64,000 nt of DNA, taken from NCBI GenBank assembly GCA_037447605.1, contig CM074806.1:744001-808000 (forward strand). Reading direction: 5' to 3'. This document shows positions 3,001-6,000 of this stretch, piece by piece; positions within the stretch are counted from its first letter, which is position 1; every line of letters begins with the position of its first letter. The translations under genes and the position numbers were made by a program. Below the pieces are notes generated by a model. The model did no database searches. It saw nothing but the letters and a program-made list of their open reading frames with translations, and had not been told where the DNA came from. Source of the stretch: Zygnema circumcarinatum SAG 698-1b (taxonomy: Eukaryota; Plantae; Zygnematophyceae).

Positions 3001-6000
3001 GATATTTTACTCCTTACTTTGCCCATGTTGAAAACTTCAGAGTCTTCTTCTTCGGAGTGCACGACTGGAAGATTGGCTTTTGGGGGGACCTACAATTCAA
3101 GGACAACTCTCTGAAAGCCCCTTTCTCCTACACCCGAAGGAGAACAATACAGTGGGTCTCCATCATGATCCTGTCGCCATTCTTGACTTTGCCAGCCTCT
3201 ACCCCTCCCTCTATATAGCACACAACCTCTGCTACAGCACTCTCCTTCACCCCGACGATGCCGCTTCTATGCCTGACGACTCAGTTCTTGTTAGGTGAAT
3301 AATCAATCCAAATTCATAAGCACTTTGAAGTCCTAACAAAATTTCCAAAACTCTGGCAAGACCTGAATATCCGTCTTGTATGCTCGTTTTTTCCCGTCTG
3401 TTTTCAACTGCCTAATATTGGTCAAAACCTGCCGATTGCTCGTTTTTTTTGTCCTCTCTTCCTTCAGTCCGACGGGAGCGCGCTTTGTGGTCCCAGAAGT
3501 TCGCCGCGGCGTGCTGCCACGTGTCTGCAGCGCACTAATCACAGCGCGCCAGGTGGCGCGCTCCCAGATGGCGGCCGAGGGTCTGAGCACAGCGGAGAGG
3601 GCTGTGCTGGACGGGCGGCAGAAGGCGCTAAAGCTGTGCTCCAACGCGCTGTACGGATACACAGGCGCACAGGCCTCCCCCCAGCAGGCCTTCCCCCTCG
3701 CAGACTCCTGCCTCAGGTGTGGGCCTGCCCGGGGATTCATTCATTGGCCTGCTTTAAAGTAGAAAAGGTCGTGTTTTTATCTTTGGTTTGTGAAGAAAAA
3801 GGACTGGTCAAACAAGGACTGGTCAAACTCTGACTAGCCCTGACTAACTCCGGTGAGGAGTGTTTGGTCGGCTACAGTATGGGGGCGGCTTCCTGCAGGG
3901 CGGCCCTGGAGGTGGTGGAGAGGAATTTTGAGAATGCCAAAGTCCTGTACGCGCAGACGGACAGTCTCTTTGTGGCCTTCCGAGGGGCGTCCATCGCAGA
4001 AGCGATCGAACTCGGAAAGCGAGCAGCGGAGTTGGCCTCTGCTGCTTTTCGCCCTCCCATGAACCTCAAGTTTGAGCGGGTCGTATTGCCCTTCCTTCTC
4101 CTGCAGGTCTTGTTCCTCCCCTCTCTTCTCTCTTCTCTTCTTCTCTTCTCTTTCTTCTTCTTCTCTTCTCTTCTTCTCTCTTCTGCTGCTGCTGCTGCTG
4201 CTCTTTACGATGTAGCAAGCAGCTCGTTAGGGCATGAACTGTTTGGGCTATGCGAGAGATTTCCAATCCCTTGTAGAGCTGACAGGTGGCGGCATGGAAT
4301 TGGCCGGGCGGCGGCAGGTGAACCGGTACGCGGGGAGGCAGTATCCGGGGGGGTCGCTGTTCGCCCGCGGTGTGGAGGTAGCGCGACGTGACGTGCCGCC
4401 CTTTGTGCGCGCAGTGTGCGGGGCGGTCCTGCAGCTCGTATTGGTGGACAACGATGTGCAGGGAGCCATGGACCTCTGCCGCAGGGAAATTCGGCGACTC
4501 ATGGCTGGAAAATGCAGTCTGTATGAGCTGCTCATGACTGGGGTGTGTCTCCATCAATCTCTCTCTCGCTCTCCCTCTCTCGTTCTCTCTCTCTCTCTCT
4601 CTCTCGACCGCCCTCGCTTGCATTCACTGCCATATTGGCTTTGCTTTACTTGGTGCAGTCAATTATGCGCTGCTAGTCAACTCCAAATGCTCTTAAGGTT
4701 CGAGTTTATGACCCAAAAGTGGTGGTGGGTGGCAGGGCTTGTGGCGAGTAGACGATGCTGACATCAGCAGAGTGGCAGCGGGAGAGAAGAGAGAGGTAAG
4801 CGGCCCTGCAACGGCGGAGGAGGGGAGGGGCCCCCACGTGGCACTCGCTGTGAGGTTGAAGAGGAGGGACCCGGACCGCCAGTTCCATGTGGGAGAGCGG
4901 ATTCCGTACGTCCTCCTGGCCAATCAGGGGAAGCTGCAGGTGCAACTTTCAGTTCAGTTTTGAGCCAACATAGGGAACTGTAAACTATGGAGCGGCCTTC
5001 AACTACTGTAACGTTGAAAGACTAAGAATGTTTTCCCTTCTGAAGGGGCTCTTGTCCTATAGCCGTCCTGGGCATCTATGTCATGTTGTTTAAAGATGAA
5101 GGCTAAGATAACTTTTCACAGTAGTCATACAAGAAAAACAAGCTCGTTGTCGATTTATCCGACTAAAAGTAAGGGGCTACGAGGGTGCTAAGTGCAGGAT
5201 GAGATGGCGGAAGACCCTATCGAGGCTCTGCTTGCAAACCGGCAGCCAAATACCGCAGTCTACTTGGAGAACAAACTGCGAAAACCCTTAGAATCGGTAC
5301 CCGAACCAAACAACCCCAAAAAGATTAAGAAATCCAAATATCTGAAGCATACTGATGCTCGACGTTGCAGCATTCTGATTTAAAGTCTCAGAAGGAAATG
5401 GTCCCCTCAGAACAAGAGCTTTCATACCTCCAAAGGCCCTCCTTCCTTCCTTTCTCCCCTGTTTTATGGCGTTGAGTTTTGGTATCCTTTTTTGAGCTGA
5501 ACGTTTTTTTGCTGTTTTTTTCTGGACAGATTTTGGAACACGTGGTGGATGCCGGGCAGCTACGTGAACTTTTCACGGGAAGCCATACTGTTCCCCCTCC
5601 GGCGCCCAACCACAGCGCGCCACATGGCAAGCAGGCACTGGTCAGCAGTTTCTTCAAGCCGAAGCCGGTCTGTGTGGCTTGCAGGTACAAACCATGTCTC
5701 TTTCCCCACACATTCTTTACAATGTGCATGTATTTAAAAAAAAACGACAAATGGTAAAGCATAAAAAGGATAAAATCCCTGCGAACCTCACTCTCTCCAC
5801 ATTCATTCCTGTTGCGGGTGCGGACTCCCCCTCTTGCAGACGACCAATGGACGCTTCTGGAAGAGCCCTCTGTGGTGACTGCAAGGCTGCAAGTGCGGGA
5901 CAGGTGGCAGCCGTTCAGCTCGTTCAGGAAGAAGCGGAGGGGGAGCGACACCTGTCCCGCGCTTGTTCCTCGTGTCTTCGCTGCCACTCCGGCGGAATCC

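Follow-up and report, generated by a model that had tools for sequence, protein, structure and literature searches.

The window, a stretch of 64,000 nucleotides from Zygnema circumcarinatum SAG 698-1b (contig CM074806.1), holds most of an expressed gene that, judging by its sequence, belongs to an ancient sister family of the Pol delta catalytic subunit spread across the green lineage. It carries all the signatures of this YxQTDS/VNRY paralog family, namely the motifs, the degenerate exonuclease positions and the placement within the family clade. The reading that we favour, with somewhat more confidence than doubt, is that the product of this probable POLD1 duplicate would be an active, proofreading-less, specialised polymerase docking on the Pol delta B-subunit, a reading in which we infer both the activity and the docking. 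Textbook lists recognize four family-B enzymes, alpha, delta, epsilon and zeta. The same four appear in a 2019 review of plant DNA polymerases (PMC6801657). On a broader proposal our judgement is evenly balanced: the family may constitute a fifth nuclear family-B polymerase ancestral to green plants, active and exonuclease-less, with Gln or His for the first Asp of motif C and Asn for the minor-groove Lys, sharing POLD2-POLD3 and serving damage tolerance or other specialised synthesis, which would have been kept in algae, bryophytes, lycophytes and ferns and lost in seed plants.

The gene spans positions 1-6116 of the plus strand as a spliced, transcribed unit of 14 exons, with its 5' end located before the first base of the window (Table 1). 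Joining the exon DNA as a frame check gave an open frame across all 14 exons; comparisons with other proteins were made exon by exon, not as a joined protein. RNA-type contigs were aligned over 2600-6150. Where spliced contigs, from four runs in as many studies, cover the exons, not one letter differs, which excludes assembly errors as the source of the odd motifs; motif C in particular is real rather than a misread YGDTDS. The contigs contain GT..AG joints at 2802/3041, 3294/3468, 3716/3878, 4106/4318, 4939/5198, 5296/5530 and 5684/5840, while junction 4542/4736 was derived from contig pieces and junction 2228/2686 from a loose contig end at 2684. The other junctions of exons 1-5 were placed by splice sites and orthologue matches. 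The first exon, with a donor GT at 112 and 65% identity to the L001 orthologue, reads on as ...YEEDIK/LGMRF, like the fern protein P0007. The large exon matches Pfam DNA_pol_B_exo1 (7.2e-12) and aligns over 100% of its length with P0001 and P0002 (33-35% identity) and over 96% with P0003, and it contains two low-complexity inserts, one acidic and one basic, on either side of Exo I. The micro-exon is a 100% match in L001, and its peptide recurs in P0007. A (TAG)n array lies at 2364-2473.

Table 1. Exons and protein motifs of the Pol delta paralog gene, in window positions.
Feature	Position	Strand	Remarks
Exon	1..111	+	Phase 0; coding start upstream of window; end of Pol delta-type N-terminal domain (...PYEEDIK)
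Large exon	251..1360	+	370 codons; rest of N-terminal domain and degenerate exonuclease domain
Exo I position	716-730	+	LDVQF vs canonical Pol delta FDIEC; catalytic Glu to Gln
Exo II position	1256-1291	+	Canonical Pol delta GYNIxNFDxPYL; N and FD gone here
Micro-exon	1467..1493	+	27 nt, VKSVVTYGK; AG/GT borders
Exon	1848..1997	+	50 codons; splice sites; 67-80% identity to orthologues
Exon	2115..2228	+	38 codons; Exo III position at its end
Exo III position YSLHEA	2208-2228	+	Canonical Pol delta YCLKDA; Asp to Glu; not conserved family-wide
Exon	2686..2802	+	39 codons; joint 2802/3041 in four runs
Exon	3041..3294	+	Motif A; Pfam DNA_pol_B 7.7e-14; joints from RNA-type contigs
Motif A DFASLYPS	3185-3208	+	Metal-binding Asp and steric-gate Tyr retained
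Exon	3468..3716	+	Fingers and motif B; best PDB match human POLD1, 2.5e-14
Motif B	3616-3669	+	R, Q, K, N, Y, G retained; NS to NA
Exon	3878..4106	+	Motif C; last codon Q (4104-4106)
Motif C YAQTDS	3948-3965	+	First Asp to Gln; second Asp (metal ligand) retained
Q/VNRY replacing KKRY	Q 4104-4106, VNRY 4318-4329	+	Split by exon junction
Exon	4318..4542	+	VNRY and RGVEVARRD
RGVEVARRD replacing KGxExVRRD	4366-4392 (RGVE 4366-4377)	+	In exon 4318..4542
Thumb exon	4736..4939	+	Family-specific invariant GLWRV; contig pieces 4735-4934; 70-75% identity to orthologues
Exon	5198..5296	+	33 codons; joints 4939/5198 and 5296/5530
Exon	5530..5684	+	First CxxC of CysA (5671-5682) at its end
Last exon	5840..6116	+	Second CxxC of CysA, CysB, stop TGA (6114-6116); Pfam zf-C4pol 6.2e-12
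CysA second CxxC	5871-5882	+	Last exon
CysB	5964-5975 and 6015-6032	+	Last exon

Within the family-B motif set, motifs A and B are intact, and motif C retains Tyr, Thr, the second Asp and Ser, but carries Gln for the first Asp. Aligned to residues 741-804 of human POLD1, YAQTDS falls on Y753-G754-D755-T756-D757-S758, with G754 changed to Ala and D755 to Gln; the second Asp corresponds to D757 and is retained, as the preliminary description had stated. That description had placed motif A, motif B, YAQTDS, Q/VNRY and RGVE in a segment ending at 4335, and all five were found on the plus strand, in frame and where it put them, with RGVE slightly past that end. Motif A occurs in 53 of 54 family members, the RQxxLKxxxNxxYG signature of motif B in all 54, and Gln or His at the first-Asp place of motif C again in all 54; (V/I)NRY is present in 50. 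Where motif B reads NA in all 54 members, 119 of 145 canonical proteins have NS. The changes at motif C and KKRY are not due to chance. Among 192 homologues carrying both motifs, every one of the 52 with (V/I/H)N before RY has Gln or His at the third place of motif C, and every one of the 140 with Lys before RY (139 of them KK or RK) has Asp there. Three sites thus changed a single time and stayed fixed thereafter: motif C's first Asp gave way to Gln or His, the lysine pair of KKRY to Val-Asn, and the Ser of the motif B NS to Ala. In the thumb, G-L-W-R is invariant in 32 members, and chlorophyte members have WRQ where RRD should come after KGxE, thereby removing another likely DNA contact.

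The exonuclease domain has followed a different course. An active 3'-5' exonuclease site (Exo I DxE, Exo II NxxxFD, Exo III YxxxD) was looked for in the window and was absent. The Exo I column is 36% conserved in the family, some members having LHVQ or LHVE, and in a 19-member alignment the catalytic columns of Exo I, Exo II and Exo III show at most 36% conservation or are deleted, whereas those of motif A and motifs B and C are 100% conserved. The alignment thus indicates that the exonuclease catalytic residues have decayed and that proofreading has been lost. The domain build is that of a full Pol delta, comprising the N-terminal domain, exonuclease fold, palm, fingers, thumb and CysA/CysB tail. 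All eight C-terminal cysteines of CysA and CysB are encoded in the window, and they are kept in 16-18 of 19 family members. The degenerate exonuclease motifs, these eight cysteines and the start of the gene before the window had been overlooked in the preliminary description.

With its polymerase motifs invariant and its exonuclease motifs decayed, the protein is most likely an active, proofreading-less polymerase. Such an enzyme would retain DNA synthesis without proofreading, and its CysB cluster would provide the docking site for the common B-subunit (POLD2, together with POLD3), as happens in Pol delta and Pol zeta; from the conserved cysteines only, we infer POLD2 binding. In family-B structures, the second of the two motif C Asp residues binds the metal and the first faces away (PMC8764526). 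The second Lys of KKRY forms a hydrogen bond to the n-2 base and retains the primer terminus at the polymerase site (PMC4333401). The Lys that would read the minor groove at primer position n-2 has disappeared together with the exonuclease site, and their joint loss would amount to a dismantled mismatch-sensing and site-switching apparatus. A polymerase of this kind could be suited to repair or damage tolerance, for instance the extension of mismatched or damaged primer ends, and it may have the error-prone or low-processivity character that had been suggested earlier. Archaeal PolB2 (Dpo2) offers a mechanistic analogy: lacking both the Exo motifs and the first motif C Asp, it was once considered dead, yet it is an active, exonuclease-less extender of mismatches and lesions (PMC8764526). 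The Sulfolobus enzyme and the green family both have degenerate Exo motifs and a replaced first Asp, which is an invariant His in PolB2 and Gln or His in the family. PolB2 is, however, not close kin, is far smaller, has no CysA/CysB tail and also lacks the Tyr of motif C; the analogy concerns mechanism only.

Other family-B enzymes tolerate such substitutions poorly. Changing the first Asp greatly lowered the activity of human Pol alpha and of two replicases from viruses (PMC8764526), and changing the second Lys of KKRY to Ala almost abolished synthesis in RB69 gp43 and Pol epsilon (PMC4333401). Both changes are fixed in the family, so its activity could be very low. This leads to the main rival, which we consider unlikely though worth serious attention: a non-catalytic pseudo-polymerase, a structural or regulatory subunit whose Pol delta fold and CysA/CysB tail are kept to hold or titrate POLD2, POLD3, PCNA or DNA. 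Besides the two crippling substitutions, in motif C (first Asp) and in KKRY (second Lys), this rival is favoured by the dead exonuclease site, by the retained C-terminal cysteines, and by the score of the fern orthologue against the Pfam polymerase model, half that of canonical POLD1 (265 vs 538 bits). Retention of a family-B fold for a non-catalytic role has a eukaryotic model in the C-terminal module of Pol epsilon, Pol2 (PMC2669801). In that inactive module, however, both polymerase and exonuclease residues have decayed, whereas in the green family only those of the exonuclease have. In 53-54 of 54 members, residues that serve chemistry and dNTP binding alone (Asp of motif A, the second of the two Asp in motif C, and motif B's Arg, Lys, Asn and Tyr) have persisted from before the chlorophyte-streptophyte split, while the unused exonuclease residues of the same protein drifted. 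That split is estimated at over 700 My ago. Furthermore, PolB2, formerly given the same label, turned out to be active.

The similarity searches point to a Pol delta ancestry. The scores of the individual window exons for the YxQTDS family exceed those for canonical POLD1 two- to threefold (sum 1201 vs 423 bits), and the Pfam exonuclease (PF03104) and polymerase (PF00136) models both exceed their curated cut-offs on these exons. The fern orthologue P0007 scored 49.8 bits for PF03104 and 264.7 bits for PF00136, and its matches among PDB sequences were human POLD1 (428 bits), yeast Pol3 (343), yeast Rev3 (168) and Pol alpha (94). Its predicted structure (pLDDT 82, pTM 0.82) is disordered only in two inserts, with pLDDT <50 in those equivalent to the Exo I-flanking inserts of the window, and its top five Foldseek hits are all Pol delta chains, ahead of Pol zeta. 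The family resembles POLD1/Pol3 in domain order, fold and length, in an identical motif A, in keeping the core of motif B and motif C's second Asp, and in the CysA zinc site and CysB iron-sulfur cysteines, POLD1/Pol3 being its best sequence and structure match. It differs in lacking the Exo I/II/III catalytic residues, in the two disordered inserts flanking Exo I, in the changes of YGDTDS to Y(A/G/C/S)(Q/H)TDS, KKRY to (V/I)NRY and NS to NA, in the failure to detect POL3_N in the orthologue, and in forming a separate, faster-evolving clade. The preliminary description had located the enzyme outside the alpha/delta/epsilon/zeta set; this holds insofar as the family is a separate orthologous group, but the group itself is Pol delta-derived by its PDB scores and Foldseek matches.

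It is very improbable that the gene, instead of being a Pol delta paralog, represents REV3 (the catalytic subunit of Pol zeta) or a derived form of it. The missing exonuclease residues, the inserts near the border of the N-terminal and exonuclease domains, the retained CysA/CysB tail and a few REV3-like local strings (such as ALKL..N..YGYT and LADS) would fit that origin. REV3 retains YGDTDS and KKRY, however, and the orthologue is far less similar to yeast Rev3 (17% identity) than to the Pol delta sequences, as the PDB scores and the ranking of five Pol delta chains above Pol zeta attest. Window exons 8 and 9 are likewise closer to POLD1 than to Rev3; neither POL3_N nor REV3_N was detected by Pfam in the fern orthologue; and the proteins measure 1100-1350 aa, not 1500-3000. 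REV3 is nonetheless the likely functional analogue of the family, as a Pol delta-like family-B enzyme without proofreading that has kept the CysA/CysB tail. That tail is reported to be the means by which REV3 shares Pol31 and Pol32 with Pol delta (PMC3526297).

In trees built without sequences of REV3 or Pol alpha, the family comes out as a single clade (support 100) split from canonical Pol delta and not nested within POLD1, with an internal branching that matches the species tree. Five window exons, each placed alone, all fell in the streptophyte part of this clade, and canonical Pol delta from animals, fungi, protists and plants occupied the other side of the tree (95 and 100). A green-lineage duplication, represented by a tree in which the paralogs are forced to group with the canonical Pol delta of green species, was not rejected (AU p 0.324). 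The family evolves about three times faster than canonical Pol delta, and its position outside all canonical Pol delta (95) may be due to long-branch attraction. On present evidence, the family probably originated by a duplication of POLD1 no later than the green-plant common ancestor, with later loss in seed plants. A viral origin was rejected, the CysA/CysB tail being present and the family tree tracking the species tree.

The homologue search recovered 54 proteins with Y-x-(Q/H)-T-D-S, nearly all of which also have (V/I)NRY and N-A-x-YG. Their hosts are chlorophytes, Chlorokybus, Klebsormidium, Closterium, a moss, a lycophyte and ferns, so that YxQTDS-type proteins occur in green algae and in three groups of land plants. 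None of the 54 came from seed plants, which appear to be without this polymerase. Canonical POLD1 is present as a second locus in Physcomitrium (P0168 vs P0187), Micractinium CCAP 211/92 (P0265 vs P0202) and Auxenochlorella (P0268 vs P0207), and it was found in Chara and every other green lineage sampled. These companion genes weigh heavily against the idea that the alga's sole Pol delta has evolved fast and is still replicative, which we regard as even less credible than a REV3 origin: orthologues stand beside canonical POLD1 in the moss and both trebouxiophytes, and we know of no precedent for a replicase without proofreading and without KKRY. Together with the exon scores and the fully supported clade, the presence of canonical POLD1 in these three species bears out the earlier view of a paralog distinct from the replicative Pol delta.

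Selective constraint was estimated from three closer orthologues of other organisms rather than from the window gene, as the nearest relatives of the latter are ~52% identical and synonymous sites are saturated. Among these orthologues, dN/dS was 0.12-0.23 overall and 0.06-0.16 without the large exon. A decaying pseudogene or an assembly artefact, as the unusual catalytic motifs and the retention of intron 8 or intron 11 in some contigs might suggest, can practically be dismissed in view of the open frame of 14 exons, the RNA-type contigs of four studies in which correctly spliced forms are deeper than retained ones, dN/dS well below 1 and the same substitutions in 54 proteins; the earlier judgement that this is no pseudogene was sound.

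If the family holds up as a distinct, conserved relative of Pol delta devoid of proofreading, the replication and repair of algae, mosses and ferns would include an extra player, and the family would provide a natural experiment on the roles played by the KKRY lysines and by motif C's first Asp. It would also raise the question of why seed plants manage without this polymerase. Gene targeting is easy in Physcomitrium, making the function directly testable there. No paper describing a YxQTDS/VNRY Pol delta paralog was found in the literature searched, and Kazlauskas 2020 does not mention the family. In databases, the paralogs are named 'DNA polymerase delta catalytic subunit' or 'hypothetical protein', and the second gene is thus hidden under the name of the first; if the two are indeed distinct, Pol delta gene counts and reasoning on mutation rates should keep them apart.

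The first 7000 nucleotides of the window (1-7000, + strand) carry a gene of 14 exons whose borders are all GT..AG, as established by sequence reading and a splice-site check, and whose frame remains open through to a TGA stop codon at 6114-6116. Because exon 1 lacks a start codon, the 5' end must lie upstream of the window; about 150 residues are found upstream of the corresponding point in P0007, the full-length fern orthologue. Pfam assigns DNA_pol_B_exo1 to the large exon, DNA_pol_B to four exons, and zf-C4pol to the last one. Several introns hold long microsatellites, and a degenerate tandem array lies 600 bases 3' of the stop codon.

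Exons, active-site motifs and repeats of the window gene
Feature	Positions	Strand	Basis or remark
Exon 1	1-111	+	splice sites, open frame
Exon 2 (large exon)	251-1360	+	splice sites, open frame
Exon 3	1467-1493	+	splice sites, open frame
Exon 4	1848-1997	+	splice sites, open frame
Exon 5	2115-2228	+	splice sites, open frame
Exon 6	2686-2802	+	splice sites, open frame
Exon 7	3041-3294	+	splice sites, open frame
Exon 8	3468-3716	+	splice sites, open frame
Exon 9	3878-4106	+	splice sites, open frame
Exon 10	4318-4542	+	splice sites, open frame
Exon 11	4736-4939	+	splice sites, open frame
Exon 12	5198-5296	+	splice sites, open frame
Exon 13	5530-5684	+	splice sites, open frame
Exon 14, with stop	5840-6116	+	splice sites, open frame
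Motif A	3185-3208		DFASLYPS
Motif B	3616-3669
Motif C	3948-3965		YAQTDS
Q before VNRY	4104-4106		last codon before intron
VNRY	4318-4329		across the intron from Q
RGVEVARRD	4366-4392
Microsatellites	2258-2319, 2364-2515		intron after 2228; (CT)31 and (TAG)50
Microsatellite	4122-4200		intron after 4106; CT-rich tract, then (CTG)n
Microsatellite	4558-4605		intron after 4542; (TC)24
Tandem array	6727-6901		~9 copies of 19-nt unit TGAGTACCCAACAACAACA

Certain sequencing runs contained 57-60% of the sampled words, in agreement with the exon share of the stretch. Contigs from four such runs, belonging to four studies, lie on exons only, pass from one exon to the next precisely at the predicted joints, and carry zero differing letters relative to the window exons. 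The joints backed in this way are 2228/2686 and those 3' of exon 6, the earlier ones being placed by splice sites and matches to orthologues. Hence the gene is expressed as spliced RNA, and its unusual motifs are real rather than assembly errors. Short contigs of the RNA-type runs also cross the 161-nt intron that precedes the exon with motif C (3687-3904); their depth is below that of the spliced contigs, and retention of this intron would break the frame ahead of motif C. In one run, a contig (4911-5222) crosses the intron after 4939, again at lower depth. In three runs, one contig agrees with exon 3041-3294 up to 3088 and continues with unrelated letters, and another opens with unrelated letters and agrees from 5619 onward; these foreign strings were not found anywhere in the window, and both contigs are probably assembly chimeras.

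The polymerase motifs described earlier, including QVNRY and RGVE, were all recovered where they had been placed. YAQTDS aligns to residues 753-758 of human POLD1 (HMMER), with G754 replaced by A, D755 by Q, and D757 kept. The exonuclease site, overlooked in the preliminary description, is also altered: Exo I reads LDVQF, the N and FD of Exo II are gone, and Exo III reads YSLHEA. The search for YAQTDS-type homologues that had been proposed yielded 54 family proteins, all with Y-x-(Q/H)-T-D-S as motif C, RQxxLKxxxNxxYG, and NA instead of NS; motif A is present in 53 and (V/I)NRY in 50. The changes in motif C and KKRY are fully coupled, since Q or H in motif C always occurs with N for the second KKRY Lys, while every protein with D in motif C has Lys at that site (KK or RK in 139 of 140). 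The catalytic columns of Exo I, II, and III show poor conservation or are deleted within the family; all eight C-terminal cysteines are kept. Following KGxE, streptophyte members and the window gene have RRD, and chlorophyte members such as P0014 have WRQ, a change that could cost the protein another contact to the minor groove, perhaps that of the Arg in PMC4333401.

Used in a word search, the large exon returned four proteins (60-100% coverage, 33-37% identity), one of them on 15-kb metagenome contigs bearing a whole orthologous gene with YAQTDS and VNRYAG, as in the window gene, and LHVQ at Exo I. A profile search across 1.84 billion representatives, together with two P0007 word searches, supplied full-length members. 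These members occur in ferns (Adiantum, Ceratopteris), a lycophyte (Diphasiastrum), a moss (Physcomitrium), streptophyte algae (Klebsormidium, Chlorokybus, Closterium), and chlorophytes (Coccomyxa, Trebouxia, Symbiochloris, Myrmecia, Chlorella, Micractinium, Auxenochlorella, Monoraphidium, Scenedesmus, Tetradesmus, Dunaliella, Haematococcus, Volvox, Bryopsis). None of these searches yielded a seed-plant member; seed-plant matches to P0007 were all canonical POLD1, below a score gap (at least 328 versus at most 309 bits). Physcomitrium, Micractinium CCAP 211/92, and Auxenochlorella possess both a family member and canonical POLD1.

Window exons were entered one by one in searches and trees. Each scores far better against the family than against canonical Pol delta (1201 versus 423 bits, summed), with ~51-54% identity to Klebsormidium and land-plant members. 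In a tree of 55 rows made up of family proteins, canonical Pol delta, and an archaeal PolB outgroup, the family forms a single clade (support 100) with a long stem (1.38) and inner branching that follows the species tree, and the canonical Pol delta sequences all group in a second clade (95). Five window exons, placed in a tree as separate rows, fall inside the family clade, in its streptophyte part beyond Chlorokybus. End branches leading to family members have ~3 times the length found for canonical Pol delta of the same plants. An AU test did not reject a tree that unites the family with canonical Pol delta of the green lineage (p 0.324). The family may thus have arisen by duplication at the root of green plants and then evolved faster, or it may be older.

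Three orthologues from other organisms (L001, L005, L006) gave dN/dS of 0.12-0.23 for the gene as a whole, and of 0.06-0.16 once the large exon is excluded (dS 0.67 for the closest pair), far from the value near 1 that the preliminary description had considered contrary to its reading. AlphaFold2 modelling of P0007 with 32 family sequences (pLDDT 82, pTM 0.82) folded every domain, with disorder confined to the pair of inserts that adjoin Exo I and to two short loops; Foldseek placed human and yeast Pol delta on top and Pol zeta next.

Proofreading residues have thus decayed, metal- and dNTP-binding residues are frozen, and the CysA/CysB tail is kept. In family-B motif C, the second Asp is the metal ligand and the first points away; its loss lowers activity in some enzymes (PMC8764526). 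Archaeal PolB2 lacks the first Asp and is still an active, exonuclease-less extender of mismatches and lesions (PMC8764526). The second KKRY Lys hydrogen-bonds to the n-2 base and holds the end of the primer within the polymerase site, and upon its loss the primer moves to the exonuclease site (PMC4333401). With no exonuclease site left to switch to, these sensing contacts would have been rebuilt. We moderately favour a product that would act as a specialised polymerase without proofreading, working with Pol delta accessory subunits. The main alternative, a non-catalytic scaffold, would account for two crippling substitutions, at the first motif C Asp and the second KKRY Lys; it appears less likely, given that exonuclease residues decayed whereas polymerase residues froze in the same protein.

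No earlier description of the motif strings or of plant Pol delta paralogs was found in the open-access literature, and the family is absent from a survey of family-B polymerases. A review of plant polymerases gives only alpha, delta, epsilon, and zeta (PMC6801657), and database labels of family proteins read Pol delta or hypothetical. Compared with window 3041-3716, the metagenome locus L001 (8490-10487) divides the motif A exon into four parts and that of motif B into three, indicating that intron positions vary widely among lineages. In P0047, a chlorophyte-type EukProt member of 1881 aa, a predicted N-terminal Endonuclease/Exonuclease/phosphatase domain (PF03372, residues 21-189) precedes the polymerase; this may reflect a merged gene model, and the fusion, if real, would hint at a repair role.
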